A stretch of DNA of 64,000 bases from Macrostomum lignano. Its lineage: Eukaryota. The position numbers and the translations under genes were made by a program. The DNA lies in NCBI GenBank assembly GCA_002269645.1, contig NIVC01001660.1:62001-126000 (forward strand), in the 5' to 3' direction. Within the stretch, counting starts at the first letter, position 1. Each line of letters begins with the position of its first letter. Shown in pieces: positions 18,325-45,841 of this stretch. The notes beneath the pieces are model-generated. The model did no database searches, was not told the DNA's origin, and was given only the letters and a program-made list of their open reading frames with translations.

Positions 18325-20721
18325 CTATTTTCCGCGCTTCCGCCCGCTGCCAGGAGAGACAGCGGCGCCGCCCCTGGGGCCGCCGCGGCCGATTAGCGCG
18401 GCCGGAGCATCTTCGGCGGCCCCGGTGATCAGCAGGTCGTCGCTGAGACCGCCGCTGCCGCTACTGCCAATCAGCGACTCGACAACATTCTCTAGGGCCC
18501 AATTGTGCTCCACAATCTCCAGGGTCTCCCATTCGGCTTTGAAAGCTTTGTTAGCGTCAAAGCCTTGGCCGCCGGCGGCCCCGCCCGGGTTCATCATCAT
18601 GTTGTCCTGCATCAGGCGGGCCTGCGGGCAGGGAATTCAATTAAATAACTTACCATATATATAAAACTACTGTACTGAATGAGGCTACTGAAAGTAGGCT
18701 GGAAATATTAGCCAATACGCAAAACTTAAGGCACCCGTCTGTAAAGCTAAGCATTAGGTTGCTGTAAATCTAGGGCCCCTGTTGCTGTAAATCTAGGATC
18801 CTGTTGCTGTAAATCTAGGGCCCCTGTTGCTGTAAATCTAGGATCCTGTTGCTGTAAATCTAGGGCCCCTGTTGCTGTAAATCTAGGATCCTGTTGCTGT
18901 AAATCTAGGATCCTGTTGCTGTAAATCTAGGGCCCCTGTTGCTGTAAATCTAGGATCCTGTTGCTGTAAATCTAGGGCCCCTGTTGCTGTAAATCTAGGA
19001 TCCTGTTGCTGTAAATCTAGGAACCTGTTGCTGTAAATCTAGGATCCTGTTGCTGTAAATCTAGGGCCCCTGTTGCTGTAAATCTAGGATCCTGTTGCTG
19101 TAAATCTAGGGCCCCTGTTGCTGTAAATCTAGGGCCCCTGTTGCTGTAAATCTAGGATCCTGTTGCTGTAAATCTAGGGCCCCTGTTGCTGTAAATCTAG
19201 GATCCTGTTGCTGTAAATCTAGGGCCCCTGTTGCTGTAAATCTAGGATCCTGTTGCTGTAAATCTAGGATCCTGTTGCTGTAAATCTAGGGCCCCTGTTG
19301 CTGTAAATCTAGCATCCTGTTGCTGTAAATCTAGGAACCTGTTGCTGTAAATCTAGGATCCTGTTGCTGTAAATCTAGGAACCTGTTGCTGTAAATCTAG
19401 GAACCTGTTGCTGGGTTGCTGGGACCTGGGTCCTAGTGATGCAAATATACGGCGCGCTGCTGTAAATCTTTAGCACGATGCTGTAAACCTACGGAGATAT
19501 GCTGTAAACCTACGGAGATATGCTGTAAACCTACGGAGATATGCTGTAAACCTACGGAGATATGCTGTAAACCTACGGAGATATGCTGTAAACCTACGGA
19601 GATATGCTGTAAACCTACGGCGCCATGCTGTAAACCTACGGCGCCATGCTGTAAACCTACGGCGCCATGCTGTAAATCTACAGCGTGTAAACCTACGGAG
19701 CCATGCTGTCATCAAAGGTCTAAAGGCAAAGTCTCACCTGATCGGCGCTATTATCGGCGCCCAGTACAAGCGTGTAGACGCTGCGCAGGCCGAAGATGTT
19801 GAGAAAATACCAGCTAGCAGAGCTGACCCAGCTGGCGTCCAGGCTGACCAAAGACTCGCAGCCGCGCTGCAGCATGGGCTTGAAACGGTAGGTCAGCGGG
19901 AACGGCACCTTGGTGGTGAGGAAGCCGGAGAAGGCCCAGTTAATCCAGCCGCCAATCACCAGCATGGGGATCATGTTCAATACGTTGCCTTTGACCATCT
20001 CCGTCATCATTGACGGGTCCGTCATTGGATTCTTCATCATGGCGTTTTCGCGTTTCACTGTCTTGAAGAAGCCGTGCTCGGGATCGTTGAAGTAGTACTT
20101 GCGGCTGGCGAATGCCTGCCTGGGGATGTAGTTGGCGTTCTCTCGGAGCAGCCGGCTGCGCATCAGCACCTGCGCAGCGAGGGATGGGCGGCTCCAGGTA
20201 AGGGATGCGATTCTCGCGGCTGGATGGGGCGGATCTCAGAGGCGATTGGGGGGGGGCGGTTAGGCGGTGGGGCAGATCTCAGGTGCGGTTGGGGGGGGGC
20301 GGATCTCAGGGCCGGTTGGGGGGATCTTAGGGCCGGTTGGGGGGGCGGATCTCAGGGCCGGTTGGGGGGGGCGGATCTTAGGGCCGGTTGGAGGGGGGCG
20401 GATCTCAGGGTCGGTTGGGGCGGATCTTAGGGTGCAGTGGTTAGAAACGGATTTCAGGGGCCGTTAAAGCTGTTCTTGAGGCAATAAATTTGAGAAGCTA
20501 AACAAGTCTAGACTACTATGGAGCAGAGGCAGACAACTAAAAAAAATAAAATCACAAGCGGAACCCACCTGCTGATCGGAGACCTGCTCGGGCTCCGCCT
20601 TTTTCTCTGCGCTAATCAAAATAGTGACGTAGTGGCGAATCACTCCGAATAGAAAGGTGATGATGACCAGGGGCAGGAACACCCACATGCGGATGGCCGA
20701 GTCCAGAAGCAGCTCAGCCAT
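18325..20721 (-). CDS. EMC3: ER membrane protein complex subunit 3 (TMEM111), 293 aa
   Basis: Exons 20569-20721, 19738-20169 and 18325-18621, all GT-AG and phase 0. Motifs [83 protein letters not shown]. Confidence 0.95.
18756..19710. repeat. Two related minisatellites (22/23-bp and 21-bp) in EMC3 intron 2
   Basis: taggatcctgttgctgtaaatc and tagggcccctgttgctgtaaatc (18756-19412), then atgctgtaaacctacggagat (19478-19710); both share gctgtaaa. Confidence 0.95.
20205..20460. repeat. G-tract degenerate repeat in EMC3 intron 1
   Basis: Repeated gggcggatctcagggccggttgggggg. Confidence 0.8.
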
Positions 20722-20809
20722 GGTGCCAGCTGGAATGTAAAAAAATTTTTTTTTAGATCTGACCCTAAGCTGATCATTTCGGGCTGCCATCCGCAATTAG
20801 CGATTCTCA

Positions 20810-21215
20810 ACTATCACCTGGGATTAACGATCTTCGATTATCATCTGGGATTACCGATACTCGATTATCACCTGGGATTAACGATACTCGATTATCACCT
20901 GGGATTACCGATACTCGATTACCACCTGGGATTAACGATACTGAATTATCGCCTGGGATTAACGATACTCAATTATTCCCCAGGATTACCGATCCTTAAG
21001 TATCACCTGGTATTAAAGGTCCTTAATTATCAGCTGGGACTAATGGTCCCTAATTATTTTCAAGGATTAAAGATCCTCATCACCTGGTATTAGAGATCCT
21101 GAATTATCAGCTGGGATTAACAATCCCTAATTGTCACCTGGAATTAACGATACTCGATAATTAACATAGGACTAACGATTCTCAATTATCAATCAGGATT
21201 ATCATCGAGTCTCAC
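20810..21215. repeat. 27-bp decaying minisatellite in the OTC-EMC3 spacer
   Basis: Unit gattatcacctgggattaacgatactc; period 27 checked at 20821, 20848 and 20875. Confidence 0.85.
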
Positions 21216-21696: not shown

Positions 21697-24600
21697 TCAG
21701 AAGCTCGGCATGGGACAAGCCGGTCGGTACTGATCGTTGAGCACATTGAGCAGGACAGACATGACTGTCCACTTGCGATTGTGAGACTCCGGCCACACGA
21801 GGCTTCGCTTTGAGTCGTAGAAAATATCGTCGGTGACTTCCTCCTGCTTGCGGGGCAGGCAGTGCATAAACACCCAGCGCGGCTTGGCGTGCGCCACCAG
21901 GCTGGAGTTCACCTGAGCGGGGTTGGACAGGTGTTAATTGTTTATCTAGTTAGATGAGATCATAAAATAAGGTAGGCTTAATAATTACTGCACTCCAGAC
22001 TGATCTGTGCCGCTAGATAAGGTGAGATAATTACTGCACTCCTGACTGATCTGAGTGCCGCTAGATAAGGTGAGATAATTACTGCACTCCTGACTGATCT
22101 GTGTGCCGCTAGATAAGGTGAGATAATTACTGCACTCCTGACTGATCTGAGTGCCGCTAGATAAGGTGAGATAATTACTGCACTCCTGACTGATCTGTGT
22201 GCCGCTAGATAAGGTGAGATAATTACTGCACTCCTGACTGATCTGAGTGCCGCTAGATAAGGTGAGATAATTACTGCAGTCCTGACTGATCTGAGTGCCG
22301 CTAGATAAGGTGAGATAATTACTGCACTCCTGACTGATCTGTGTGCCGCTAGATAAGGTGAGATAATTACTGCAGTCCTGACTGATCTGAGTGCCGCTAG
22401 ATAAGGTGAGATAATTACTGCAGTCCTGACTGATCTGTGTGCCGCTAGATAAGGTGAGATAATTACTGCACTCCTGACTGATCTGAGTGCCGCTAGATAA
22501 GGTGAGATAATTACTGCAGTCCTGACTGATCTGTGTGCCGCTAGATAAGGTGAGATAATTACTGCACTCCTGACTGATCTGAGTGCCGCTAGATAAGGTG
22601 AGATAATTACTGCAGTCCTGACTGATCTGTGTGCCGCTAGATAAGGTGAGATAATTACTGCACTCCTGACTGATCTGTGTGCCGCTAGATAAGGTGAGAT
22701 AATTACTGCAGTCCTGACTGATCTGAGTGCCGCTAGATAAGGTGAGGTAATTACTGCACTCCTGACTTATCTGTGTCACTAGATAAGGTGAGATAATTAC
22801 TGCAGTCCTGACTGATCTGTGTGCCGCTAGATAAGGTGAGATAATTACTGCACTCCTGACTGATCTGTGTGCCGCTAAATAAGGTGAGATAATTACTGCA
22901 CTCCTGACTGATCTGTGTGCCGCTAAATAAAGTGAGATAATTACTGCACTCCTGACTGATCTGTGTGCCGCTAAATAAGGTGAGATAATTACTGCACTCC
23001 TGACTGATCTGTGTGCCGCTAAATAAGGTGAGATAATTACTGTACATTTAATGATCCCTACCGATGGCTAGGTGAGCTAATTATCGCCAATGAGGCAAGA
23101 TAATTAAACATGATTAATTAGTGTTAACCTGTAATTCATAGTTAATAATATTTGTTAAGTTGAGCTGAGCCAGCACCTGAGATGCCTCACCTGGAACCCT
23201 TTGAAATCTTTCAGGCGGCGCTCCTTCTCCGCCTCGCGGCCCATACTGACGAATGTGTCCGTGACAATGACGTCAGCGCCGCGAACCGCCTCGGCGGGAT
23301 CTCTGGTGAGCACCAGCTGGGTGCCGTACTGGCGGCTGAGCTCGCGGGCGTCCTGCACCACGGCCGGATTCGGGTCATAGCCCGCGGGCGAAGCGATGCG
23401 GATCTGCGGCGACGAAGAGGTTGTTTTGTGGGATACCGTTGAAGGACCAGCGGGACAGGTATTGAAGGCACAGGGAAACAGGTATTGAAGGCACAGGGAA
23501 CAGGTATTGAAGGCACAGGGAACAGGTATTGAAGGCACAGAGGAACAGGTATTGAAGGCACAGGGGAACAGGTATTGAAAGCACAGGGGAACAGGTATTG
23601 AAGGCACAGGGAACAGGTATTGAAGGCACAGAGGAACAGGTATTGAAGGCACAGGGGAACAGGTATTGAAGGCACAGGGAACAGGTATTGAAGGCACAGG
23701 GGAACAGGTATTGAAGGCACAGGGAACAGGTATTGAAGGCACAGGGGAACAGGTATTGAAGGCACAGGGGAACAGATATTGAAGGACCAGCGGGACGGAC
23801 AGGTATTGAAGGCACAGGGAACAGGTATTGAAGGCACAGGGGGACAGGTATTGAAGGCACATGGAAACAGGTATTGAAGGCACAGGGGAACAGGTATTGT
23901 AGACACGGGGAAAAGGTACTCAAGGCACAGAGGAACAGGTATTGAAGTGACAGGGAAACAGTGGAACAGGTATTGAAGTACTAGGGTCCAGTGAACTGAA
24001 AAACCAGATAGATAGATAGATAGGTAGATAGATAGATAGTAAGGTACTGAAAAACCAGATAGACAACCAATTAAAGGACAAGAGACACAGCAATGAAAGA
24101 GCCAGGGGGAACAAGCATTGCCTGACAGGGGGCAATACTGATGAGGAATTACTGAAATAGGATTTCAGCCCAACCCAAACCCCGGTATGCTCACAGACAT
24201 GCCCAGCTTGGGGCAGCCCATCATCAAGGAGTGCGTCATGTTGTTGTCTCCGTCGCCTACAAAAGCCCACACGAGGCCGTTGAGGTGGCCAAAGTTTTCG
24301 TACGCGGTGAAAAAATCGGCCAGCACCTGCAGCGGATGGTACTGGTCAGACAGGCCGTTCACTATGGGCACGCTGGAGTGCTCGGACAGGGTCATCTGGA
24401 CGGGAATTGAGAGGTAGGGAGCATTACATTCGTTATACTTAGTCACTAAACCCAACCTGAATCTCACTAAGCCCAAAATGAATCTCACTTATCCCAGCCT
24501 GAATCTCACTAAACAACAAAACCTGAATCTCACTTACACCCAACCTGAATCTCACTTACACCCAACCTGAATCTCACTTACACCCAACCTGAATATCACT

Positions 24601-25629
24601 AAACCCAACCTGAACCTCACTAATCCCAAAATGAATCTTACCAAGCCCTACCTGAATCTCACTAAGCCCAACCTGAATCTCACTCAGTCCAACTATCATT
24701 TCATTTATCCCAACTTGAATCTCACTAAAACCAATCTGAATCTCACTGTCCAACTGGAAGCTCACTCATCCTGACCTGAAGCTCACTCATCCAAACCTGA
24801 ATCTCACTCATCTCAACCTGAATCTCACTAAGCCCAACCTGAATCTCACTTATCCCAACCTGAATCTCACTCAGTCCAACTGGAATCTCACTCATCTCAA
24901 TCTGAATCTCATAAAGCCCAACCTGAATCTCACTCATCTCAATCTGAATCTCATAAAGCCCAACCTGAATCTCACTCATCTCAATCTGAATCTCATAAAG
25001 CCCAACCTGAATCTCACTAAGCCCAACCTGAATCTCACTCATCTCAACCTGAATCTCACTCATCTCAACCTGAATCTCACTCATCTCAACCTGAATCTCA
25101 CTCATCTCAACCCGAATCTCACTAACCCCACCCCGCCCAATAAATAAGCAAGCCAAAACGCAGCTGCCAATCTCACCAGCGAGTCGTGCGCATACACCCT
25201 GGCCAGCACGGCATCGCAGAAGCCGGACAGCACCTTAGCCGTGTCCGGCAGAGACTCATTCGTGCCCAGGTGTACATCCTGCGGACTGAGGAACACCGGC
25301 TGACCGCCGAGCAGGAAGAAGCCGGTCTCAGTGCTCACCCGAGTGCGGGTGCTGCGCTTCTCAAAGATCATGCCAAGAGAGTGGCCCTCTAGCGGTCGGT
25401 AGCTCAGAAGCCTGTCCTGAGCGTGTCGCGCCTTCAGATCCTTGGCCGTCCACAGCAGCTGGGCGATTTCGGACTCTGAGTAGTCGCGCAGAGTGAGAAA
25501 ATGCCGGCCTTTGAGATTGCTCCACTTGTCGGTTGAGGCGGCCGTTGATGAAGCGGCGCGGGATGCGATGCGAGGAGACTGGACAACGGCCAGGCGACCG
25601 ACTTTGATGAGCAATTGCAGTGGCGACAT
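21697..25629 (-). CDS. OTC: Ornithine carbamoyltransferase, mitochondrial-type, 360 aa
   Basis: Exons 25177-25629, 24195-24395, 23191-23403 and 21697-21912, all GT-AG and phase 0. Carbamoyl-phosphate motif [15 protein letters not shown], ornithine-binding SMG loop (TDTFVSMG), HCLP, and an N-terminal presequence. Confidence 0.97.
21985..23045. repeat. 48-bp minisatellite in OTC intron 3
   Basis: Unit ataattactgcactcctgactgatctgagtgccgctagataaggtgag; produces the spurious [16 protein letters not shown] ORFs. Confidence 0.95.
23445..23985. repeat. ~21-bp minisatellite in OTC intron 2
   Basis: Unit ggaacaggtattgaaggcacag with variable G runs. Confidence 0.95.
24455..25125. repeat. 21-bp minisatellite in OTC intron 1
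   Basis: Unit ctgaatctcactcatctcaac; produces the spurious SEIQVEM ORFs. Confidence 0.95.
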
Positions 25630-29012: not shown

Positions 29013-32000
29013 TCACTCCGCCCCAGACTGTCCGCCACTCAGGCGAGCCCGCATCACCGCCATGCAGCCGTAGTGGGTGACCTGGCGCGACGGGAACCTG
29101 GCAAAGGCGCTGGCCCCGATCCGGTTCTGGCAGACGCTGCACCGGGTGCCCTCCTCGATGGCCACCCGGCCGGAGCGGACCCGGGCGAAGGCGGCCGCAG
29201 TCTGCAGCCGCTCGGCGTGGTACAGACCGCGGCGGGACTGCAGCAGGCGCTTCTCGGCCTCGAGCCGTTGCAGCGATGTCAGCAGATAGTCAGACAGGTC
29301 GGCCAGCGGGGTGGCCGGCGGCAGCAGCGGCAGGACTCGGACAGGCGGTATCTGGCCCGGCCGGCGTTTCAATAATTGTAGCGCGCGCTGCGTCATTGGC
29401 GCCGGAGCGCGCGGCGCCTACAAAAGTAGTGCTTTATTTATAACAAACCAAGGCAGACTGTTTAGGATTTCACTTTGAAAGATGAGCAATACGGGGGCCG
29501 ATTTCATAAAAAAGCTACAAGTGACCAGTGAAAAGTCGACAAATGACAAGTGTCAAGCGTCAACGATTTTGGTTTCATAAACATGGGTCCTTAATCGTGT
29601 TAAAAATAACTCAATTTTATGTCAATGGTTGAGACACAATATGAATTTAAGGATCTGTGTTTTAGACAGACTTGCTTTAAAGACGGCCTCTGCGTTCTTC
29701 TTGGACTTCAATACACAGCTTTAAACCACTTTAAAGCTCACTTTCAGGGAGGTTATTGACATAGATTTTATTTTGCGGGATTTATTCGATCACTTTCCCG
29801 GACATATTGCAAGGATTATTGTATGTATCTAAATAAGCGAGCTAGCTTCTCTCTTCTCTTTCCTTCCTGACTCGAGAAATTTCTTAATGAAATTTTGTCT
29901 ATGGTAAGAATGTGGGGGCTTTGCCGCCACACCCCTAGCAGGGGCTTCGCCCCCACACCCCCACCCCCAACTTCAATCATAGACATACAAGTATGGCTCC
30001 GGGATTTATCTGAATACATGCCGCAAAATTAAAGTAGTTTAAATAAGATATTCTATGAGTTTTTCGGTCGGTATTTCACTTAAATCCCATACCGACCTCA
30101 AACCCATAGAAAATATTATACTTAATAAAGCTAAAATTGTCACAGCGACTTGTCAAAAACACAAGACAAGAGGAAGTATTTTCACACAGAAGCATCCAGC
30201 TTAGTGCATGTCTATGGACGAAACCCCCGAAGAAGCGATTGTAATTTGTCAAATTTCGCTTGTCACTTGTAATTTGTCCGACAAGTGCTTTATGAATAGC
30301 CCTACTCACATGCAATTTATAGGCCTCGGCAGGCAGGGGCGCCAGCAGCGCTTTGATCAGCTGACCGTAGACCTCGCCCTGAAGGCTGGCTAGCGAAGAA
30401 TCGGCCGCATCGCCAGTTTCGGCAGTTGGCTGGCTGAGAATCTCTTCAGCCAGAGACTCAGCCTTCTCCGGCGACTCCAAATACTGAGCCAGAATAGTGA
30501 ATGCCAGCTCGTACTGGCCCAGCCTGCTCAGCAGCAGGGCTCGCTCCTCCAGCATGTCGTTGTTAGGATAGCGGGCCAGCAGCTCCTGGGCGTTGTAGTG
30601 CCGGGAGCGGCGCAGGAAGGCCAGCAGTCGGGACCGGGCGCCGGCCACGGCTAAAGGCTCGGTCTGCTGCTCAAGCCTGAGCCGGTACTGGTTAGCCAGT
30701 CGGGTGTGCAGCGATTCGCTGGTGTCAGGCGGCTTACAGTGCAGTACGCAGTGCTCAAGATAGTCTGTGAGCAGTTGGGGAGCGCTAGACTCCAGGAAAT
30801 TGGCCACCTCTATGCGTGGCAGCGCATTGTCACCGTCTGCTTGGCTCTCTGTGAAGATTCGCAAGCCCTCCTTGGGGTCGCGCTCGATTATCCACCGACT
30901 GTAGCGGAATATGAGATCCTGGTAGGGCACGCCCAGTTCCTGCACGATGCAACAGTTTTGTGGGATGCAGGGTTAGGGGATGCGGTGTCAGGATAGGGGC
31001 TGCAGTGTCAGGATAGGGGGCTGCAGTGTCAGGATAGGGGGCTGCAGTGTCAGGATAGGGGGCTGCAGTGTCAGGATAGGGGCTGCAGTGTCAGGATAGG
31101 GGCTGCAGTGTCAGGATAGGGGGCTGCAGTGTCAGGATAGGGGCTGCAGTGTCAGGATAGGGGCTGCAGTGTCAGGATAGGGGGCTGCAGTGTCAGGATA
31201 GGGGCTGCAGTGTCAGGATAGGGGCTGCAGTGTCAGGATAGGGGGCTGCAGTGTCAGGATAGGGGGCTGCAGTGTCAGGATAGGGGCTGCAGTGTCAGGA
31301 TAGGGGGCTGCAGTGTCAGGGTAGGGGCTGCAGTGTCAGGGTAGGGGCTGCAGTGACAGGATAGGGGGCTGCAGTGTCAGGATAGGGGGCTGCAGTGTCA
31401 GGATAGGGGGCTGCAGTGTCAGGATAGGGGCTGCAGTGTCAGGATAGGGGCTGCAGTGTCAGGATAGGGGGCTGCAGTGTCAGGATAGGGGCTGCAGTGT
31501 CAGGATAGGGGCTGCAGTGTCAGGATAGGGGCTGCAGTGTCAGGATAGGGGGCTGCAGTGTCAGGATAGGGGGCTGCAGTGTCAGGATAGGGGGCTGCAG
31601 TGTCAGGATAGGGGCTGCAGTGTCAGGATAGGGGGCTGCAGTGTCAGGATAGGGGGCTGCAGTGTCAGGATAGGGGGCTGCAGTGTCAGGATAGGGGGCT
31701 GCAGTGTCAGGATAGGGTGCTGCAGTGTCAGGATAGGGGCTGCAGTGTCAGGATAGGGGCTGCAGTGTCAGGATAGGGGGCTGCAGTGTCAGGATAGGGG
31801 CTGCAGTGTCAGGATAGGGGGCTGCAGTGTCAGGATAGGGGGCTGCAGTGTCAGGATAGGGGCTGCAGTGTCAGGATAGGGGCTGCAGTGTCAGGGTAGG
31901 GGCTGCAGTGTCAGGGTAGGGGCTGCAGTGACAGGATAGGGGGCTGCAGTGTCAGGATAGGGGGCTGCAGTGTCAGGATAGGGGGCTGCAGTGTCAGGAT

Positions 32001-35000
32001 AGGGGGCTGCAGTGTCAGGATAGGGGGCTGCAGTGTCAGGATAGGGGCTGCAGTGTCAGGATAGGGGGCTGCAGTGTCAGGATAGGGGGCTGCAGTGTCA
32101 GGATAGGGGGCTGCAGTGTCAGGATAGGGGGCTGCAGTGTCAGGATAGGGGGCTGCAGTGTCAGGATAGGGGGCTGCAGTGTCAGGATAGGGGGCTGCAG
32201 TGTCAGGATAGGGGGCTGCAGTGTCAGGATAGGGGCTGCAGTGTCAGGATAGGGGGCTGCAGTGTCAGGGTAGGGCTGCAGTGTCAGGGTAGGGGCTGCA
32301 GTGACAGGATAGGGGGCTGCAGTGTCAGGATAGGGGGCTGCAGTGTCAGGATAGGGGCTGCAGTGTCAGGATAGGGGGCTGCAGTGTCAGGATAGGGGGC
32401 TGCAGTGTCAGGATAGGGGGCTGCAGTGTCAGGATAGGGGCTGCAGTGTCAGGATAGGGGGCTGCAGTGTCAGGATAGGGGGCTGCAGTGTCAGGATAGG
32501 GGGCTGCAGTGTCAGGATAGGGGCTGCAGTGTCAGGATAGGGGCTGCAGTGTCAGGGTAGGGGCTGCAGTGTCAGGGTAGGGGCTGCAGTGACAGGATAG
32601 GGGCTGCAGTGTCAGGATAGGGGGCTGCAGTGTCAGGATAGGGGGCTGCAGTGTCAGGATAGGGGGCTGCAGTGTCAGGATAGGGGGCTGCAGTGTCAGG
32701 ATAGGGGGCTGCAGTGTCAGGATAGGGGCTGCAGTGTCAGGATAGGGGGCTGCAGTGTCAGGGTAGGGGCTGCAGTGTCAGGGTAGGGGCTGCAGTGACA
32801 GGATAGGGGGCTGCAGTGTCAGGATAGGGGGCTGCAGTGTCAGGATAGGGGGCTGCAGTGTCAGGATAGGGGGCTGCAGTGTCAGGATAGGGGGCTGCAG
32901 TGTCAGGATAGGGGGCTGCAGTGTCAGGATAGGGGGCTGCAGTGTCAGGATAGGGGGCTGCAGTGTCAGGATAGGGGCTGCAGTGTCAGGATAGGGGGCT
33001 GCAGTGTCAGGATAGGGGCTGCAGTGTCAGGATAGGGGGCTGCAGTGTCAGGGTAGGGGCTGCAGTGTCAGGGTAGGGGCTGCAGTGACAGGATAGGGGG
33101 CTGCAGTGTCAGGATAGGGGGCTGCAGTGTCAGGATAGGGGGCTGCAGTGTCAGGATAGGGGGCTGCAGTGTCAGGATAGGGGGCTGCAGTGTCAGGATA
33201 GGGGGCTGCAGTGTCAGGATAGGGGCTGCAGTGTCAGGATAGGGGGCTGCAGTGTCAGGATAGGGGGCTGCAGTGTCAGGATAGGGGGCTGCAGTGTCAG
33301 GGTAGGGACTGCAGTGTCAGGGTAGGGGCTGCAGTGACAGGATAGGGGCTGCAGTGACAGGATAGGGGCTGCAGTGTCAGGATAGGGGCTGCAGTGTCAG
33401 GGTAGGGGGCTGCAGTGTCAGGATAGGGGGCTGCAGTGTCAGGATAGGGGGCTGCAGTGTCAGGATAGGGGCTGCAGTGTCAGGGTAGGGGGCTGCAGTG
33501 TCAGGATAGGGGGCTGCAGTGTCAGGATAGGGGCTGCAGTGTCAGGATAGGGGCTGCAGTGTCAGGATAGGGGGCTGCAGTTTCAGGAAGTGGCTGCAGT
33601 GACAGGATAGGGAGCTGCAGTGACAGGATAGGGGGCTGCAGTGTCAGGATAGGGGGCTGCAGTGTCAGGATACGGGGCTGCAGTGACAGGAAAAGTTGCT
33701 GCAGTGACAGGATAGGGGGCTGCAGTGACAGGAAAAGTTGCTGCAGTGACAGGAAGTGGCTGCAGTGACAGGATAGGGGCTGCAGTGTCAGGATAGGGGG
33801 CTGCAGTGTCAGGGTAGGGGCTGCAGTGTCAGGATAGGGGCTGCAGTGTCAGGATAGGGGGCTGCAGTGTCAGGATAGGGGGCTGCAGTGTCAGGATAGG
33901 GGGCTGCAGTGTCAGGGTAGGGGGCTGCAGTGACAGGAAGTGGCTGCAGTGACAGGATAGGGAGCTGCAGTGACAGGATAGGGGGCTGCAGTGACAGGAT
34001 AGGGGGCTGCAGTGTCAGGATACGGGGCTGCAGTGACAGGAAAAGTTGCTGCAGTGACAGGATAGGGGGCTGCAGTGTCAGGATAGGGGGCTGCAGTGAC
34101 AGGAAAAGTTGCTGCAGTGACAGGATAGGGGGCTGCAGTGTCAGGATAGGGGGCTGCAGTGACAGGAAAAGTTGCTGCAGTGACAGGAAGTGGCTGCAGT
34201 GACAGGATAGGGGGCTGCAGTGACAGGATAGGGGGCTGCAGTGACAGGATAGGGGGCTGCAGTGACAGGATAGGTTAATGCGGTAATGTTAGACTAAGGT
34301 TTCAAGATAGAGTTCTACAACAGTCAAACAGAAAAGCTAAATCCGATTTACCTGCAGGTACTGCACGCTGTCCTCAATATTGGAGATCTGAGAGCCGGGT
34401 TGCTGATAGTGCTCCATGAGCAGTTTCAAACTTGACTCGTGATCGTTATTGTTTTTATAGAGCAGCAGCAGGCTTGACCACATTCGCTTCTGTTTCAGAC
34501 AGGCTTCCGCCTCGCGCAGGTGACAATAGTTGGTGGTGCGAAGCAGGGAAGGCACCAGAGCGGGATTGCTCTCCAGGTAGCATTTCAGCAGTGAAGTGTC
34601 AACTAGCTGACGGAGCTTCTCTAAGTCAGCGGTGATTGGCTGTGGTGGAAGGCATCAGGTTGAAGCCATTTGCACTTTCCAGTTCGCTTCGAAGCCAGAC
34701 TCCAGATTGCCTACTCTCCCCCTTTAGCCACTGCTATCTACTCTCCCCCTTTAGCCACTGCTATCTACTCTCCCCCTTTAGCCACTGCTATCTACTCTCC
34801 CCCAACCACTCTTCTGTCTACTCTTCTCTCTTAGCCTTTGTAGCCCCTGAGAATCTCACACCTTAGAGAATCTTACTCATTAGAATCTCCGGCCCCTGAG
34901 AATCTCACCCCTGATTATTTCACTCGTGAGAATCTCAGCCCTGAGACTCTCTTCTCCCTAAGAATCTCTCGAAGGGGGTAGCCTAGTGGTCTCTGATGTG

Positions 35001-38000
35001 CCAGCGGCCCAGGCTCGATTCCAAGTGCAGTCACGTTAATTTGGGGCTAAATTGGAATCTCAGCTTGGCTCTGCTCGTGCAATTGCCGCCCTTCAGGGCC
35101 AACCCTTAAGGCACAGTAAAGTGTACATGCCTAATGATAAAGTCAGGGCCGCTGTGCACTCCTGTGTGAGAGTGTGCCTGTGAGAATGACTGCGTACGTA
35201 TCCGCGCGCTTGTGTGCCTGCTCAGGGGAGTCGGCGGAACGGGCAGCAATGCCTCTCGCCGGTTGTGTGACAATGTCGCCGCCCACGCCCCCGGGACCCT
35301 CCCCAGGCGACCAGCAGCTCACCTGGTATTTGTCAACAGTGTAGAACTGAATAGGAGGCGGCGGCGGCGGCACCTTCTGAGCGATCTGAGCTAGCAGCTT
35401 CTTGCGCACCGAAGACAAATACTTGGCCAAAGCGAAGTAGCTCTCCAACAGGTCCTGGCCGCTGAACTCAGGCACCCGGCCGGGAAAGCTGACTCGATCC
35501 CGGAACTCCCTCGGCGCGATAGGGTACATGGCAACCACATTGGCCGGATCAATGCTCAGCAGCTCTAACAGGTCCAGCGACTCAGCGAACTGGCGCTGGC
35601 AGAACAGGTTGAAGGCGTAGTGGCACTTCACCAGCGAGACGTCAATGTCCCGCAGCTCGTCCGCCCTGTCCGGATCCGACTGGCCGATCTCGTGCAGCCG
35701 TAGGGCCAGCTCAAAATCGCGACGCTGTATGAGAACTTTTATCTGGGCTGACAGCGGCCGCGGGTGCAGGCAGTAGACTGACTTGGCAGAGGCAGCGAAC
35801 AACACGCCGCGGTGCTGGCTGACGCTGCGCAGGCTCTGCACGGGGGTGTGACTCAATGGAGCTAGGGGTGTGACTCATTAAAGCTAGGGATGTGACTCAT
35901 TAAAGCTAGGGATGTGACTCATTAAGGCTAGGGGTGTGACTCATTAAGGCTAGGGGTGTGACTCATTAAGGCTAGGGATGTGACTCATTAAGGCTAGGGG
36001 TGTGACTCATTAAAGCTAGGGATGTGACTCATTAAGGCTAGGGATGTGACTCATTAAAGCTAGGGATGTGACTCATTAAGGCTAGGGGTGTGACTCATTA
36101 AGGCTAGGGGTGTGACTCATTAAGGCTAGGGATGTGACTCATTAAGGCTAGGGGTGTGACTCATTAAGGCTAGGGATGTGACTCATTAAGGCTAGGGATG
36201 TGACTCATTAAGGCTAGGGGTGTGACTCATTAAGGCTAGGGGTGTGACTCATTAAGGCTAGGGATGTGACTCATTAAAGCTAGGGATGTGACTCATTAAA
36301 GCTAGGGATGTGACTCATTAAAGCTAGGGATGTGACTCATTAAGGCTAGGGGTGTGACTCATTAAGGCTAGGGATGTGACTCAATGGAGCTAGGGGTGTG
36401 ACTCATTAAAGCTAGGGATGTGACTCATTAAGGCTAGGGATGTGACTCATTAAGGCTAGGGATGTGACTCATTAAGGCTAGGGATGTGACTCATTAAGGC
36501 TAGGGATGTGACTCATTAGAGCTGGGGATGTGACTCATTAGAGCTGGGGATGTGACTCATTAAAGCTGGGGATGTGACTCATTAGAGCTAGGGGTGTGAC
36601 TCATTAGAGGTAGGGGTGTGACTTATTTGGGATTATTCATCAGGGATTAGAGCTAAGGGTGACTCATTGGAGCTAAGGGTGACTCATTGGAGCTAAGGGT
36701 GACTCCTTGGAGCTAGAGGTGACTTATTGGAGCTAAGAGTGACTTATTGAAGCTAAGGGTGACTCATTGGAGCTAAGGGTGACTCATTGGAGCTAGAGGT
36801 GACTCATTGGAGCTAAGAGTGACTTATTGAAGCTAAGGGTGACTCATTGGAGCTAAGGGTGACTCATTAGAGCTAAGGGTGACTTATTGGAGCTAAGGGT
36901 GACTCATTGGAGCTAAGGGTGACTCATTGGAGCTAGAGGTGAGTTTTTGGATCTATGCGTGACTGCAACTCAAGGCGAGAGTGGTGGAAGAGGCGATTAT
37001 CAAGGAGCTGGCCCCTGAGCACAGACGCGTACACAGGCACTTTCTCTGCGATGTCAGGCACGCACATACCGACCCTTTGGGGGCTAACTCATTAAGTAAT
37101 CTCAAACTCACCGGAATGTCCAAATTCTGTATCAGCGAAGTCCGCTGATCAACAGTTCGAACTTCAACAAAATCGGCACAGATGCCAATCAGAAACGGGG
37201 CCAAATATTGCAGCAGCAGAGGCTCCTTGGACCACTTGACCATCAGCGGCCCGTCGTTGCTTTTCTGACCGCGTCGCCAGCGGCCCTTCTCGTTGACAAA
37301 CATAGTCTTGGAGTCCTTGGAGCAGAGCGCCAGAGTGTTGCGCTCAACTGGCGCCATGACCGGGCCCGTGGCCGGTGAGAAAGGAAACAGCTCGAGGATT
37401 TCTCCGTCATCAACGCGAATTCGAAAGTAGTCGGTTTTTAATGCGACGCAGAGCGCTGTTGGGCCAATCCAGCTGACGGCTCTGGCCGCGGCGGGCAGGG
37501 CGAGTTCCTGGCGGAGCTCGGCGAACTGCGAGGCGCCAGGAGGCCAGTGGTACAGCAGCAGCCGCTGCTTGACGTGAACGCACAGGCGCAAGTTGGCTTG
37601 TCTGCCGCTTCCGCCTCCGGGATCTGCCGGGGTCTGGTGACAGCAGGCGAACAGGGAAGCGCCTCGGGTTCTGTCCAGCACGCTGAGAGCCTTCAACGTG
37701 TCCAGATTGTGCACCGAGACTGTGCCATCTGACAGGCTAATTAGCAAGCTGAGCGGCACCACAGCTTCCAGCTGCTGGATTGGCCGCCTGGAGAATGATT
37801 TGTGCGACTTCAGCAGCTGGATGGAGGGGCATTTGTCCAGGCCCGAGATGGAGTAGCTCAGCAGGTGGCCCTGTTCATGGCAGTGGGAGGAGCTGAATTA
37901 TTAATGAGACTGAGGCTCATGGGGAATTTCTCAGATCATGAAGACAAGACTCATAGGGAATTTCTCAGATTGCAAAGACAGAAAGGCTCATGGGGAATTG

Positions 38001-38717
38001 TCCACGTTGTAAAGACACAAAGGCTCATGGGGAATTTTCCAGGTTGTAAAGACACAAAGGCTTATGGGGATTCGTTCTGATTGTAAAGACACAAAGGCTT
38101 ATGGGGAATTGTCCAGGTTGTAAAGACACAAAGGCTCATAGGGAATTGCCCAGGTTGTAAAGACACAAAGGCTTATGGGGAATCGTTCTGATTGTAAAGA
38201 CACAAAGGCTTATGGGGAATTGTCCAGGTTGTAAAGACACAAAGGCTTATGGGGAATCGTTCTGATTGTAAAGACACAAAGGCTCATGGGGAATTGTCCA
38301 GGTTGTAAAGACACAAAGGCTCATGGGGAATTGTCCAGGTTGTGAAGACACAAAGGCTCATGGGGAATTGTCCAGGTTGTAAAGACACAAAGGCTCATGG
38401 GGAATTGTCCAGGTTGTAAAGACACAAAGGCTCATGGGGAATTGTCCAGGTTGTAAAGACACAAAGGCTCATGGGGAATTGTCCAGGTTGTAAAGACACA
38501 AAGGCTCATGGGGAATTGCCCAGATTGTAAAAAAGATACTGAGAACAGTGAGGATCAATCAATGTTATTACAACAATGATCTCCATGGTCTCCAAGCAGA
38601 ACTAACCTGATTGGTGCCAACCAGCAGAGTGGGTCCACAGTAAGTGAGGCATTCAATCTGCAGCGGTAGGTTATGCAAGATGGTGACCGCCTCGAATGGC
38701 TCGTAGTTTTCCAACAT
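29013..38717 (-). CDS. VPS39: Vam6/Vps39-like HOPS subunit (~901 aa)
   Basis: Exons 38607-38717 (MLENYEPFEAVTILHNLPLQIECL), 37112-37870, 35323-35835, 34352-34639, 30310-30939 and 29013-29417, all GT-AG and phase 0. CNH domain, clathrin-repeat region (CHLREAEACLK; LIFRYSRWII...GLRIFTE) and Vps39_2 Zn motif CSVCQNRIGASAFARFP...HYGC. Confidence 0.93.
30978..34275. repeat. 20/21-bp minisatellite, ~3.3 kb, in VPS39 intron 4
   Basis: Unit ggatagggg(g)ctgcagtgtca, roughly 160 copies. Confidence 0.97.
34974..35110 (+). mobile_element. tRNA-derived SINE head or tRNA pseudogene fragment in VPS39 intron 3
   Basis: A-box-like TAGCCTAGTGG (34979-34989) and B-box-like GGCTCGATTCC (35012-35022) at Pol III spacing; no complete cloverleaf. 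Confidence 0.45.
35862..36945. repeat. 22-bp and 20-bp related minisatellites in VPS39 intron 2
   Basis: ctagggatgtgactcattaagg grading into agctaagggtgactcattgg; the array abuts the 3' splice site at 35836. Confidence 0.95.
37905..38525. repeat. 37-bp minisatellite in VPS39 intron 1
   Basis: Unit gttgtaaagacacaaaggctcatggggaattgtccag. Confidence 0.93.
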
Positions 38718-40032: not shown

Positions 40033-43000
40033 TCAACTCAGCAGTTGGGTCCACAGCACAGCCAGCAGAGCCACCAGCACAGCCAGCAGAATCAGCAGAG
40101 CCCCCCTCGATCGAAGCAGATGCGGCAGGCTGACCTGCGCCTTCACCATCAGCAGCCCCAATCTCGACCGAGGCTTCCGCTGTCCGCCGGGCTGCTCAAA
40201 CAGTTTGAGCTCGTCAAACCAGGACGGGGACTGGACAGTGTCCGGCGGGTGCAGGATAAACAGGCGACAGGCCTCGGAGATGACCGTCTCCAATTGGATG
40301 GCGCCGCTATTGGGAATGTTGGCCAGGCAAGAGTGCAGCACAGCAAAATCAATGTCTTCCGGAGGCAGAGACAGCAGACGATCCTGAAATTTGAACCGAT
40401 TTGTACTACTTAGCAGTAGCAACATCAAATATATATTTTACCTGCGATTCGATTCACCTGCTTGTGCAGAACCAAAGCAGCGCTAAAGTACAGCGGCATC
40501 AGCGGATGACTGGCCAAAAAGAAATCGTACAGCCGCAGGATTGCGTCAAGGTCGTCTAGCACGTGACCAAACCAAGTGATCACCCAGGCAACTGAGAATG
40601 CCGGCGGAACTTCGTGCTTTTCAATGAGATCGGCTATTCGTTTGCCGCGCGGGTCCTGAGGGGGGGGGCGCGTTTGGAGTGCGATGGGTTGCAACAATGC
40701 TATGGCTAATGAGGCACTAACATGACGAACTGCACTCTAAGACCCTTGTGACTGCCCCCATGAGATCCCTCAATACTCGGACTGTCTCTCCCTGGTCTCC
40801 CTGAGACTGCCTCCTTGAGACCTCTTTGAGACTGCCCCCTTGAGACCTCTTTGAGACTGCCCCCTTGAGACCTCTTTGAGACTGCCCCCTTGAGACCTCT
40901 TTGAGACTGCCCCCTTGAGACCTCTTTGAGACTGCCCCCTTGAGACCTCTCTGAGACTGCCCCCTTGAGACCTCTCTGAGACTGCCCCCCCCGAGACCTC
41001 TTTGAGACTGCCCCCTTTGAGACCTTCCTGAGACTGCCCCCCCGAGACCTCTTTGAGACTGCCCCCTTGAGACCTCTTTGAGACTGCCCCCTTTGAGACC
41101 TTCCTGAGACTGCCCCCCGAGACCTCTTTGAGACTGCCCCTTGAGACCTCTCTGAGACTGCCCCCTTGAGACCTCTCTGAGACTGCCCCCCCCCGAGACC
41201 TCTTTGAGACTGCCCCCTTTGAGACCTTCCTGAGACTGCCCCCCGAGACCTCTTTGAGACTGCCCCTTGAGACCTCTTTGAGACTGCCCCTTTGAGACCT
41301 TCCTGAGACTGCCCCCCGAGACCTCTTTGAGACTGCCCCTTGAGACCTCTCTGAGACTGCCCCCCTTGAGACCTCTCTGAGACTGCCCCCCCGAGACCTC
41401 TTTGAGACTGCCCCTTTGAGACCTTCCTGAGACTGCCCCCCGAGACCTCTTTGAGACTGCCCCCTTGAGACCTCTTTGAGACTGCCCCCTTTGAGACCTT
41501 CCTGAGACTGCCCCCCCGAGACCTCTTTGAGACTGCCCCCTTGAGACCTCTCTGAGACTGCCCCCTTGAGACCTCTCTGAGACTGCCCCCCCCGAGACCT
41601 CTTTGAGACTGCCCCCTTTGAGACCTTCCTGAGACTGCCCCCCGAGACCTCTTTGAGACTGCCCCCTTGAGACCTCTTTGAGACTGCCCCTTTGAGACCT
41701 TCCTGAGACTGCCCCCCCGAGACCTCTTTGAGACTGCCCCTTGAGACCTCTTTGAGACTGCCCCTTGAGACCTCTTTGAGACTGCCCCTTGAGACCTCTT
41801 TGAGACTGCCCCCTTGAGACCTCTTTAAGACTGCCCCTTGAGACCTCTTTGAGACTGCCCCCTTGAGACCTCTTTGAGACTGCCCCCTTGAGACCTCTCT
41901 GAGACTGCCCCTTGAGACCTCTTTGAGACTGCCCCCTTGAGACCTCTTTGAGACTGCCCCCTTGAGACCTCTTTGAGACTGCCCTTGAGACCTCTTTAAG
42001 ACTGCCCCTTGAGACCTCTTTGAGACTGCCCCTTGAGACCTCTTTGAGACTGCCCCCTTGAGACCTCTCTGAGACTGCCCCCTTGAGACCTCTTTGAGAC
42101 TGCCCCTTGAGACCTCTTTGAGACTGCCCCCTGAGATCTCTTTAAGACTGCCCCTGAGACCTCTTTAAGACTGCCCCTGAGACCTCTTTAAGACTGCCCC
42201 CTGAGACCTCTTTAAGACTGCCCCCTGAGACCTCCCTAATACTGCCCCCTGAGACCTCCCTAATACTGCCCCCTGAGACCTCCCTAATACTGCCCCCTGA
42301 GACCTCCCTGAGACTGCCTCTCCCTCTGACCTGAGACCCCTGAGACCAGAGTGCCCCGAGTCCAGTTAAAACAAATAGAAACAGTCTAAAAAATTCACCT
42401 TGCTCAAAAGCAGCGGCACCAGTTTCAACAGCTCAGTAGTAACAGCCATGCTCGGGTACAGGTGCTCACGCAAGTGACTTTTAGAGACAGCCTCTACAAC
42501 ATTATAGGCGTGCCGACTGTCCAGCACAAGCAGGAATGTAATAACAATATCGTGATAGCCCTGATAATAGTGCAGGTGAGAATTCGCGTGCAACACTCGC
42601 ATAATGGTCTCCACTAGCTGGTCCTGGTAGGACATTCGCACCTGCTCGTCCATGCCGGGTGGGAATCGCTTCAGGGAGCGCTCAACGTCTAACACAACCT
42701 GCGAGTAGATTGGAAGACGGACGGTTGGCTTTGCAAGTTCATCTACTGATAAGTAGAAAGTTTAGAGTGTAACGCGAAAAGCTTGCATGGCGGGAAAAAC
42801 CCTGACGCAACGGCTTCGGCGACATTGCCCAACAACCAGCGCTATACAGACAAGCACATACAGACACGTTTACCGATGAGCTGCTCTGCCCCTTAGTGTA
42901 GGTCTTAATAGGCCAGCTGATTAAGTCTAGAGGGATGGAAACCGGTACTGCCAGTATGACCTGGCCTGGTTCAATTTCACTTTTAACTAGCTGACTAAAA

Positions 43001-45841
43001 AGGGGGGAAGGAGATGGAAGTGGGGAGACTGGGGGAGAGTGGGAGAGGGAAAGTGGGTGGGAGAGTGGGTGGGAGAGTGGGAGAGGGAGAGTGGGTGGGA
43101 GAGTGAGAGAGGGAGAGTAGGTGGGAGAGTGAGAGAGGGAGTGGGTGGGAGAGCTAAGAAAGGCAGGCAGAGATATAGACAGCGAGGGAGAGGGGGAGAT
43201 GGATTGTAGAACAAAGCAACTGGGAGGGTGAGGAGAGGGAGAGAGGGTGGGAGAGTGAGAGAGGGAGAGTGGGTGGGAGAGTGAGAGAGGGAGAGTGGGT
43301 GGGAGAGTGAGAGAGGGAGAGTGGGTGGGAGAGTGAGAGAGGGAGAGTGAGAGAGGGAGAGTGGGTGGGAGAGTGAGAGAGGAGAGTGAGAGAGGGAGAG
43401 TGGGTGGGAGAGTGAGAGAGGGAGAGTGGGTGGGAGAGTGAGAGAGGGAGAGTGAGAGAGGGAGAGTGGGTGGGAGAGTGAGAGAGGGAGAGTGGATGGA
43501 GAGTGGGAGAGGGAGAGTGGATGGGAGAGTGAGAGAGGGAGTGGGTGGGAGAGCTAAGAAAGGCAGGCAGAGATATAGACAGCGAGGGAGAGGGGGAGAT
43601 GGATTGTAGAACAAAGCAACTGGGAGGGTGAGGAGAGGGAGAGAGGGTGGGAGAGTGAGAGAGGGAGAGTGGGTGGGAGAGTGAGAGAGGGAGAGTGGGT
43701 GGGAGAGTGAGAGAGGGAGAGTGGGTGGGAGAGTGAGAGAGGGAGAGTGAGAGAGGGAGAGTGGGTGGGAGAGTGAGAGAGGGAGAGTGAGAGAGGGAGA
43801 GTGGGTGGGAGAGTGAGAGAGGGAGAGTGGGTGGGAGAGTGAGAGAGGGAGAGTGAGAGAGGGAGAGTGGGTGGGAGAGTGAGAGAGGGAGAGTGGATGG
43901 GAGAGTGGGAGAGGGAGAGTGGATGGGAGAGTGAGAGAGGGAGTGGGTGGGAGAGCTAAGAAAGGCAGGCAGAGATATAGACAGCGAGGGAGAGGGGGAG
44001 ATGGATTGTAGAACAAAGCAACTGGGAGGGTGAGGAGAGGGAGAGAGGGTGGGAGAGTGAGAGAGGGAGAGTGGGTGGGAGAGTGAGAGAGGGAGAGTGG
44101 GTGGGAGAGTGAGAGAGGGAGAGTGGGTGGGAGAGTGAGAGAGGGAGAGTGAGAGAGGGAGAGTGGGTGGGAGAGTGAGAGAGGGAGAGTGAGAGAGGGA
44201 GAGTGGGTGGGAGAGTGAGAGAGGGAGAGTGGGTGGGAGAGTGAGAGAGGAGAGTGAGAGAGGGAGAGTGGGTGGGAGAGTGAGAGAGGGAGAGTGGATG
44301 GAGAGTGGGAGAGGGAGAGTGGGTGGGAGAGTTAGAGAGGGAGGGTGGGTGGGAGAGTGAGAGAGGGAGAGTGGTGGGAGAGTGAGAGAGGGAGAGTGAG
44401 AGAGGGAGAGTGGGTGGGAGAGTGAGAGAGGGAGAGTGGGTGGGAGAGTTAGAGAGGGAGAGTGGATGGGAGAGTGGGAGAGGGAGAGTGGGTGGGAGAG
44501 TTAGAGAGGGAGAGTGGGTGGGAGAGTGAGAGAGGGAGAGTGGATTGGAGAGTGAGAGAGGGAGAGTGAGAGAGGGAGAGTGGGTGGGAGAGTGAGAGAG
44601 GGAGAGTGAGAGAGGGAGAGTGGGTGGGAGAGTGAGAGAGGGAGAGTGGGTGGGAGAGTGAGAGAGGGAGAGTGAGAGAGGGAGAGTGGGTGGGAGAGTG
44701 AGAGAGGGAGAGTGGGTGGGAGAGTGAGAGAGGGAGAGTGAGAGAGGGAGAGTGGGTGGGAGAGTGAGAGAGGGAGAGTGGGTGGGAGAGTGAGAGAGGG
44801 AGAGTGGGTGGGAGAGTGAGAGAGGGAGAGTGAGAGAGGGAGAGTGGGTGGGAGAGTGAGAGAGGGAGAGTGAGAGAGGGAGAGTGGGTGGGAGAGTGAG
44901 AGAGGGAGAGTGAGAGAGGGAGAGTGGGTGGGAGAGTTAGAGAGGGAGAGTGGATGGGAGAGTGGGAGAGGGAGAGTGGGTGGGAGAGGGAGAGAGGGAG
45001 AGTGGGTGGGAAAGTTAGAGAGGGAGAGTGGGTGGGAGAGTGAGAGAGGGAGAGTGAGAGAGGGAGAGTGGGTGGGAGAGTTAGAGAGGGAGAGTGGATG
45101 GGAGAGTGGGAGAGGGAGAGTGGGTGGGAGAGGGAGAGAGGGAGAGTGGGTGGGAAAGTTAGAGAGGGAGAGTGGGTGGGAGAGTTAGAGAGGGAGAGTG
45201 GATGGGAGAGTGGGAGAGGGAGAGTGGGTGGGAGAGTGAGAGAGGGAGAGTGGGTGGAGAGTGAGAGAGGGAGAGTGGGTGGGAGAGTGAGAGAGGGAGA
45301 GTGGGTGGGAGAGCTAGAGAGCAGCTAAGAAAGGCAGGCAGAGATATAGACAGCGAGGGGGAGGGGGAGATGGATTGTAGAACAAAGCAACTGGGAGGGT
45401 GAGGAGAGGGAGAGAGGACTCAGAAGGATTCAAAATTGGGATAAGCATGGAGGGAGCTGCCAGTAAAGCAGCAATTAAAGCAACAGGCAAATCAGGCCAA
45501 ACAAGGAGACTGCAGTCGGATTGGCGCACCTGATTATAATCCGGATGCCGTTTCAACTGTTTCTGAGTCGGCGTCGGCGGCTCCGGCTTGTCGGCGACGC
45601 GGGTGAGCAGCGGCCAGACGAGTCGGCGAAGCTCGTTGGACGCCAGGCCGTAGCGCTCGATGGCCAGGCAGCGGAGGGCGTCCACATCCGGGGAGCCGGC
45701 CGGCGATGTCGCTGAGAGCGCCTCGCGAACTCGTTCGGCTTTCCGACGTCGGAACGTCGCTAGCAAGGTCGCCGCCGAACTGGCTTCGTCGGTTGCGTCG
45801 GCAGACGATGCCGAGGCCGTGGCGGCGGCGTGAGCAGGCAT
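40033..45841 (-). CDS. TBC1D20: TBC1 domain family member 20 (Rab GAP with C-terminal TM anchor), 386 aa
   Basis: Exons 45530-45841, 42399-42698, 40458-40655 and 40033-40383, all GT-AG and phase 0. LRRLVWPLL, arginine finger LDVERS, glutamine finger YYQGYHD, ITWFGH, RLYDFFLASHPLMPLY, and a C-terminal hydrophobic anchor. Confidence 0.95.
40790..42330. repeat. ~25-bp minisatellite in TBC1D20 intron 2
   Basis: Unit gagactgcccccttgagacctcttt. Confidence 0.95.
43000..45420. repeat. Polypurine (GA/GT) satellite with a higher-order repeat in TBC1D20 intron 1
   Basis: gagagtgagagaggga and gtgggtgg units, interrupted by a ~90-bp block (gctaagaaaggcaggcagagatatagacagc...) near 43150, 43555, 43955 and 45325. 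Confidence 0.93.

Follow-up and report, generated by a model that had tools for sequence, protein, structure and literature searches.

How did it come about that, in one stretch of flatworm DNA, every intron of four conserved genes lies exactly between two codons? The stretch comprises 64,000 nucleotides of the Macrostomum lignano genome (assembly GCA_002269645.1, contig NIVC01001660.1, positions 62,001 to 126,000 of the forward strand). We call it the window and count coordinates from its first letter. On the minus strand the genes TBC1D20, VPS39, OTC, and EMC3 follow each other head to tail in this order, from the start codon of TBC1D20 (45841) to the stop codon of EMC3 (18325). A first-pass annotation, made by a model from the letters alone, had claimed that all 13 introns (two in EMC3, three in OTC, five in VPS39, and three in TBC1D20) are phase 0. 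The rebuilt gene models, the models of paralogues, and alignments with human proteins bore out this phase, and the intron numbers were the same. In the reading that we prefer, with a probability of about 0.6, the introns of these genes were completely replaced at new positions, a preference for in-frame CAG|G sites gave the phase-0 excess, and the rest was small-sample luck.

Any statement on phase depends on correct exon borders. The exons of the four genes were reconstructed from open frames and GT/AG sites and then compared with independent evidence. TBC1D20 (coding sequence, CDS, 40033..45841) has four exons, 45841-45530, 42698-42399, 40655-40458, and 40383-40033, which encode 386 amino acids (aa). 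VPS39 (CDS 29013..38717) has six, 38717-38607, 37870-37112, 35835-35323, 34639-34352, 30939-30310, and 29417-29013, for a protein of 901 aa. OTC (CDS 21697..25629; 360 aa) consists of exons 25629-25177, 24395-24195, 23403-23191, and 21912-21697, and EMC3 (CDS 18325..20721; 293 aa) of exons 20721-20569, 20169-19738, and 18621-18325, the stop codon included. All 13 introns begin with GT and end with AG, and each exon is made up of complete codons.

The VPS39 model is 98% identical to an NCBI protein from a paralogous contig (BOX15_Mlig022540g4, P0001), and this protein holds all five junction peptides. According to it, exon 2 ends with ...NLDIP at CCG|GTGAGT (37112) and exon 3 begins with SLRSVSQHRG (35835), the intron between them being phase 0; another donor, TCG|GTATGT, 42 nt further on, was ruled out by the same protein. 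TBC1D20 is 99% identical to the NCBI protein BOX15_Mlig025532g1 (P0038; 386 aa), from which it differs by two substitutions and whose structure it shares. Over all five of their junctions, the alignments of OTC and EMC3 with the human proteins (PDB 1c9y and 6ww7) are gapless, and the spliced VPS39 and TBC1D20 proteins are colinear with their orthologues over the junctions. At a paralogous locus (L004, NIVC01003474.1) the annotated OTC has 360 aa with start and stop equal to those of our model, and the annotated EMC3 has 288 aa, its stop being equal and its start shifted 15 nt downstream. The M. lignano annotation was based on RNA-seq processed with StringTie, TACO, and TransDecoder (PMC5730564), so the two NCBI proteins and the L004 gene lengths indicate that the junctions are supported by RNA, although indirectly. 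An 1187-nt transcript-like contig of a related worm (run SRR30276812) carries EMC3 with 89% identity, uninterrupted over both junctions. Wherever L004 or a further genome copy, L008, spans a junction, 29-30 of 30 bases are conserved; these copies are duplicates of the same locus and not independent data.

An exact look-up of seven candidate window proteins in a collection of 15 billion proteins returned no match, the window's own copy being unannotated in it, and the support comes instead from the 98-99% identical paralogues. The UniProt/WormBase ParaSite models of the same locus (P0002-P0006 and P0022) were rejected as evidence: they fuse TBC1D20, VPS39, and even OTC and contain frame errors and skipped exons. 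In all, the 13 introns are ordinary U2-type spliceosomal GT-AG introns.

One detail concerns the beginning of EMC3. The start annotated in L004 (L004 20159-20174, window 20721-20707) lies 15 nt 3′ of the ATG that matches the Met of EMC3 in other animals. An AG directly follows ATGGCTGAG. The model could be truncated, or a trans-splice acceptor could explain the later start.

Is phase 0 simply usual for these genes? Among 48 non-redundant introns of their orthologues, phases 0, 1, and 2 are represented by 23, 16, and 9 introns (48% phase 0), which is an ordinary mix. The first-pass estimate for 13 of 13, 0.5^13 or about 1e-4 (1.2e-4), is right for such a mix. Comparison of 13/0/0 with 23/16/9 by the Fisher test gave p=3.8e-4, and p=1.1e-3 with tool-derived structures only. 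Thus the phase-0 excess is real relative to the same genes in other animals.

Phase 0 is nevertheless not an absolute rule of the M. lignano genome, because the neighbouring coiled-coil gene, outside the four genes, carries a phase-2 intron (i1, 13960..14841, minus strand, cgg|GTAAGT...CCGCAG|c). This gene (CDS 12754-14921, minus strand) has three coding exons and no Pfam match, and its product is 98% identical to a database protein of 247 aa (P0275). Its second intron (13285..13826, minus strand, cag|GTGAGT...CGCCAG|gag) is phase 0. The remaining genes of the window, namely MAM33, two G-protein-coupled receptors (GPCRs), a 549-aa acidic protein, and a lectin/PAN open reading frame (ORF), have a single exon each, so that i1 of the coiled-coil gene is the only intron of the window in another phase, and phase 0 is found in 14 of 15.

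Are these introns inherited from the common ancestor of animals? To answer this question we compared their positions with those in eight species, starfish (Acanthaster), snail (Bulinus), urchin, oyster, zebrafish, annelid (Capitella), blood fluke (Schistosoma), and human. For all but human, the gene structures were obtained by placing the annotated proteins on their genomic loci with exact spliced matches. In VPS39, Acanthaster has 18 introns and Bulinus 24, and 17 are common to both at equal alignment column and phase. In TBC1D20, oyster, sea urchin, and zebrafish share one set of seven introns, to which the urchin adds an eighth. In EMC3 there are seven introns in Capitella, and four of these are kept in Schistosoma. 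OTC was compared with human only, where the c.77, c.663, and c.867 boundaries are confirmed in the literature (PMC12351844). The orthologues do have many more exons, as the first-pass annotation had stated for vertebrates: 24, 7-8, 7, and 9 introns against 5, 3, 2, and 3 in M. lignano for VPS39, TBC1D20, EMC3, and OTC.

Not one of the 13 M. lignano positions coincides with any of the 48 orthologue introns from the eight species, and all 48, including the 23 of phase 0, are absent from the M. lignano genes. Schistosoma EMC3 retains ancestral introns and lacks those of M. lignano, and this assigns the replacement to the Macrostomum branch within the flatworms. Mapping onto orthologue alignments had been proposed as a check at the outset, and its outcome divides the explanations proposed with it. 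Lineage-specific gain is supported for the sampled orthologues, where the 13 introns look like gains that followed a complete loss of the ancestral set. Selective retention, by which only ancestral phase-0 introns would have been kept after massive loss, agrees with the reduced intron number (13 versus 48) and with the uniform phase of what is present now, but the absence of any common position and of all the phase-0 orthologue introns refutes it for the sampled orthologues, and we regard it as next to untenable.

Two other origins were considered. No intronization of coding sequence was found at the junctions of OTC and EMC3, at TBC1D20 i1 and i3, or at VPS39 i1 and i4; the alignment is gapless at all of them, which argues that the introns were not derived from coding sequence. 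That all four genes are retrogenes is unlikely, since this would take four independent events one beside the other, and such an origin is indistinguishable from reverse-transcriptase-mediated intron loss in place. Another gene stripped of introns stands nearby: the MAM33/C1QBP-like gene (15716-16687, minus strand) has its whole Pfam domain in one uninterrupted ORF, whereas its human counterpart has several introns.

Sliding of old introns into codon boundaries was also among the first-pass suggestions. In this case ancestral introns would have shifted by a few to a few dozen bases, and some near misses can be cited in its favour. EMC3 i1 (20170..20568, cag|GTGGGT...GCGCAG|gtg) lies 4 nt 3′ of the position at which Capitella and Schistosoma retain an ancestral intron of phase 2, and VPS39 i4 (30940..34351, cag|GTAAAT...GTGCAG|gaa) has a Bulinus intron of phase 1 at a distance of 7 nt. 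Two more lie close to introns that are themselves phase 0: OTC i3 (21913..23190, cag|GTGAGG...GCTCAG|gtg, after the position of human codon 285) is 12 nt 5′ of human intron 8 (c.867), and TBC1D20 i3 (40384..40457, 74 nt, cag|GTGAAT...TTTCAG|gat) is 18 nt 3′ of a conserved bilaterian intron. However, the whole set of distances to the nearest orthologue intron (4, 11, 38, 38, 18, 29, 26, 69, 7, 63, 58, 21, and 12 nt) shows no closeness beyond chance when random placement at codon boundaries serves as the null: chance readily gives a median of 26 nt (permutation P=0.33), and also two introns at 7 nt or less (P=0.51). Furthermore, 48 introns cannot yield 13 by shifting, so most ancestral ones were lost anyway, and a review supports sliding by one base only (PMC3488318). 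The distances thus fail to support sliding, and as a general explanation it is very improbable, although EMC3 i1 and VPS39 i4 may individually be slid introns.

What distinguishes the sites at which the introns lie? Eight of the 13 follow a CAG codon, as had been noticed in the first pass, and eight (not quite the same ones) have the proto-splice-site flanks (A/C)AG|G. The flank CAG|G is found at seven introns: the four just described, EMC3 i2 (18622..19737, cag|GTGAGA...CCGCAG|gcc), VPS39 i1 (37871..38606, cag|GTTAGT...GAACAG|ggc), and TBC1D20 i1 (42699..45529, cag|GTGCGC...TCGCAG|gtt). The flank AAG|G is found at one, TBC1D20 i2 (40656..42398, aag|GTGAAT...CCTCAG|gac). In the four spliced CDS, introns occupy 7 of the 25 in-frame CAG|G sites (28%) versus 6 of the 1911 other codon boundaries (0.3%), which gives an odds ratio of 123 (p=4e-11). 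Together with the coiled-coil gene, 8 of the 15 introns of the window stand at CAG|G, well above what the exonic consensus common in animals would yield; among human introns the share is roughly one in ten.

Such sites are themselves strongly skewed in frame. In phases 0/1/2 the four CDS contain 58/7/11 AG|G, 25/0/9 CAG|G, and 13/0/1 AG|GT sites, i.e., about 75% of AG|G and about nine in ten of AG|GT sites lie at a codon boundary. This skew is likely due to codons that mostly end in G or C and to the rarity of AGG and of NNA-GGN combinations. A process needing AG|G would therefore place about 75-90% of introns in phase 0, and 14 of 15 would be unremarkable (P=0.08-0.17). At the lower value of 0.75 the probability of at least 14 of 15 is 0.08 and that of 13 of 13 is about 0.03. 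According to published comparisons, lineage-specific introns have more exonic-flank signal than old ones, and proto-splice sites are enriched in phase 0 (PMC3488318).

The Gln codons at these sites are widely conserved. At position −1, Gln is found in 115/115 orthologues for TBC1D20 i1, which splits a Gln|Val pair that is invariant (Val at +1 also in 115/115), in 18/18 for VPS39 i4, in 112/118 for EMC3 i2, and in 96/118 for EMC3 i1, and the Gln-Val pair at OTC i3 is present in human OTC. This conservation indicates that the occupied sites are older than the introns, as in the proto-splice-site model; it concerns the amino acid level only, where CAG and CAA are equivalent.

Could the locus, singled out for its striking look, be a fluke in a genome with an ordinary phase mix, where about half of introns are phase 0? 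Everything comes from 13-15 introns of a single locus, the neighbouring gene breaks the rule, and probabilities such as that given above for 13 of 13, or 4.9e-4 for 14 of 15 at a phase-0 fraction of 0.5, are not negligible among thousands of windows. On the other hand, chance leaves aside a second, independent oddity, the concentration of introns at CAG|G, which in view of the in-frame skew of AG|G here itself predicts a phase-0 excess, while the orthologues of the same genes stay at 48%. We consider a fluke unlikely.

The preferred reading may be spelled out as follows. On the line to M. lignano the four genes lost their ancestral introns completely, of which other animals have at least 24 in VPS39, 7 in TBC1D20, 7 in EMC3, and 9 in OTC. 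New introns would have been inserted, or could only have become fixed, at proto-splice sites, chiefly where an in-frame CAG (Gln) precedes a codon that starts with G. In CDS rich in G and C at third codon positions (GC3) this site preference alone would produce a strong phase-0 excess, with small-sample luck for the remainder of 13/13, and after gain most introns would have been inflated by unrelated minisatellite arrays. A candidate source is reverse splicing followed by reverse transcription; this would fit the site preference and would remove old introns as well. We infer the site preference, rather than later selection, to be the cause of the phase bias, and we likewise infer the order of loss and gain. 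The "unusual regime" of splicing evolution announced by the first-pass annotation is a fair name for the complete replacement of positions, whereas the phase-0 excess is largely expected from in-frame CAG|G sites.

Several facts weigh against this reading. The sample consists of 13 introns (15 with the neighbour) in five genes of one 33-kb locus. Each gene was compared with one to three orthologues, M. lignano being the only free-living flatworm among the species. For human OTC, which has nine introns, about two thirds of the boundaries are those assumed from the standard c. numbering. Known recent gains, in Daphnia and Oikopleura, show flat phases, and so gain alone does not predict phase 0. 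When all sites are weighted by the generic metazoan exonic consensus, only 55% phase 0 is predicted. Finally, phase 0 extends to five introns that do not lie at AG|G: OTC i1 (24396..25176, ctg|GTGAGA...GTCCAG|atg, after the position of human codon 148), OTC i2 (23404..24194, tct|GTGAGC...GCCGCAG|atc, after the position of human codon 214 and 21 nt 5′ of human intron 6, c.663), VPS39 i2 (35836..37111, ccg|GTGAGT...GTGCAG|agc, with the donor set by the paralogous protein), VPS39 i3 (34640..35322, cag|GTGAGC...CCACAG|cca), and VPS39 i5 (29418..30309, cat|GTGAGT...TTGTAG|gcg). Small-sample luck plausibly covers the remaining excess, but these five introns are not accounted for.

The same five introns speak for selection, by which only phase-0 introns would persist, for example because mis-splicing at split codons is costlier. 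According to a review, moreover, the general excess of phase 0 goes beyond what site preference can explain, and differential loss is among the proposals (PMC3488318). However, a phase-2 intron persists in the adjoining gene, and several occupied sites are ancient Gln codons, which points to site choice rather than to later filtering. We also know of no mechanism of such selection particular to this lineage. Selection is, in our opinion, a rather improbable cause.

Did the insertions leave a trace at the intron ends? The first-pass annotation had pointed to three introns that read CAG|GT...CAG|GT, as an insertion with target duplication would leave, and this reading of the ends was confirmed. 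A mobile element or the repair of a staggered double-strand break would have left a duplicated CAGGT target, and target preference would have set the phase. The direct repeats are 5-7 nt long (GCAGGTG in EMC3 i1, CAGGTGA in OTC i3, and CAGGT in TBC1D20 i1), and short direct repeats are the footprint of Daphnia neointrons. As a hint of target duplication they are nevertheless weak: given that 8/13 upstream exons end with CAG and 3/13 downstream exons start with GT, three joint cases are expected with P=0.20, the repeats are the splice consensus itself and nothing beyond it, and Daphnia neointrons are without phase bias. No similarity was detected between any two of the 13 introns (blastn, word 11), i.e., no introner families within the window, and in none of the four genes did an intron match the exons of its own gene (blastn, word 7), where old duplications could have decayed. 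The lengths of the 13 introns modulo 3 have no pattern. At these introns there is no sign of a transposon, a repair footprint, or an introner, and we hold target duplication to be distinctly unlikely.

The content of the introns is a separate matter. In 11 of the 13, minisatellite arrays with units of 15-66 nt, each array different, make up 29-97% of the length (77% in EMC3 i2, with a 22-nt unit, 88% in OTC i1, and 97% in VPS39 i4, with about 160 copies of one 21-nt unit); VPS39 i5 is without tandem repeats. The introns range from 74 to 3412 nt, and without the arrays most would be roughly 90-550 nt. Array copy number varies between genome copies, and intron lengths differ up to 3.5-fold among the three copies (3412 versus 1641 nt for VPS39 i4, 1278 versus 365 nt for OTC i3), while the exons keep 96-100% identity. 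On the sense strand several arrays are rich in pyrimidines, visible as a strong positive GC skew on the plus strand. The units in OTC i1, VPS39 i4, and VPS39 i2 carry splice-site look-alikes. In OTC i1 the unit TGGGATTAGTGAGATTCAGGT repeats the true donor motif GTGAGATT about 32 times, and in VPS39 i4 the unit CCTATCCTGACACTGCAGCCC holds CTGCAG, its degenerate copies reaching the true acceptor. The array of VPS39 i2 stops 25 nt before the acceptor. The arrays may have grown from sequence close to the splice sites or may act as decoys.

If the locus reflects the genome, what would follow? Near-total intron replacement at in-frame CAG|G sites throughout the genomes of Macrostomum, or of all Macrostomorpha, is a tentative idea, and we think it doubtful. 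If it were true, the phase-0 fraction would be far above any reported, at the opposite extreme to Oikopleura, and a site-specific gain process, maybe still active, could be caught with the help of duplicated subgenomes and sister species. A genome-wide pattern would also make the proto-splice-site account of phase bias directly testable, by comparison of occupied and unoccupied sites, their frame, and age, and a search for differences in intron presence and absence could reveal the mechanism. M. lignano serves as a transgenic model in the laboratory, underwent a recent whole-genome duplication, and has sister species that are sequenced. There is a practical side too: gene predictors that learned from other animals will set M. 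lignano exons wrongly, as the chimeric UniProt models show.

The surroundings of the four genes can be described briefly. Between 12.7 and 45.8 kb of the minus strand the coiled-coil gene, MAM33, EMC3, OTC, VPS39, and TBC1D20 stand head to tail, with gaps of about 1-3.4 kb between the last four. M. lignano is reported to have spliced-leader (SL) trans-splicing and polycistronic precursor transcripts (PMC5730564). On the plus strand there are two paralogous single-exon ORFs of rhodopsin-type GPCRs (Pfam 7tm_1; 4298-5395 and 8275-9435), 4 kb apart, a 675-aa ORF with no Pfam match (53251-55275), and, at the window edge, a reverse-transcriptase fragment (34-603). The minus strand carries a 556-aa acidic ORF (48273-49940), annotated in L008 as a 549-aa single-exon gene, and an ORF with C-type lectin and PAN domains (59055-60041).

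The origin of new spliceosomal introns and the over-representation of phase 0 are old open questions, and few animal lineages with wholesale intron turnover are known. Our search of the literature on Macrostomum and flatworms yielded no pertinent work on intron phase, gain, turnover, or introners; with no paper on intron turnover or phase bias in Macrostomum found, both are probably unreported. The phenomenon belongs to a known kind, that of fast-evolving lineages with intron turnover and of gain at proto-splice sites.

Which of the known systems does it resemble? Introners and introner-like elements of fungi and algae (PMC4457414) share with it the many gains in one lineage, and their target duplications can supply splice sites. 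Unlike them, the 13 introns have no shared sequence families. In Caenorhabditis, the novel introns studied by Coghlan and Wolfe in 2004 are reportedly flanked by a stronger AG|G consensus in the exons than the older ones, like the introns described here. Many ancestral introns are said to persist there beside the new ones, whereas in the four M. lignano genes none persists.

The proto-splice-site model (Rogozin et al. 2012, PMC3488318) agrees with our locus in the eight of 13 introns at AG|G, in several pre-existing conserved Gln codons, in the strong signal that the exonic flanks of lineage-specific introns carry, and in the greater frequency of in-frame sites. In other genomes this model does not fully explain the phase-0 excess (PMC3488318); here the frame skew is much stronger (about 75-90%) and may explain most of it, with five introns off the motif. 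The neointrons of Daphnia pulex (PMC4202315) also lie at new positions, and some have short direct repeats at both ends. They are, however, about 78 nt long and AT-rich, their phases are distributed as 30/33/37%, and their repeats of 4-12 bp exceed chance (PMC4202315), whereas the end repeats in M. lignano are no more than the splice consensus and the introns are biased in phase.

A parallel to the loss comes from another animal in which ancestral introns disappeared from conserved genes and lineage-specific positions took their place, as at all 13 positions of our four genes, namely Oikopleura dioica (PMC3488318). Its introns are uniform across the three phases (PMC3488318). In contrast, the M. 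lignano introns are phase 0 in 13 of 13 cases (14 of 15 in the window), canonical GT-AG, long (74-3412 nt), and rich in minisatellites. Oikopleura shares with M. lignano a fast-evolving genome and SL trans-splicing. With Oikopleura introns and Daphnia neointrons both flat in phase, M. lignano would represent a different outcome of intron turnover if the pattern of this locus extends to its whole genome.

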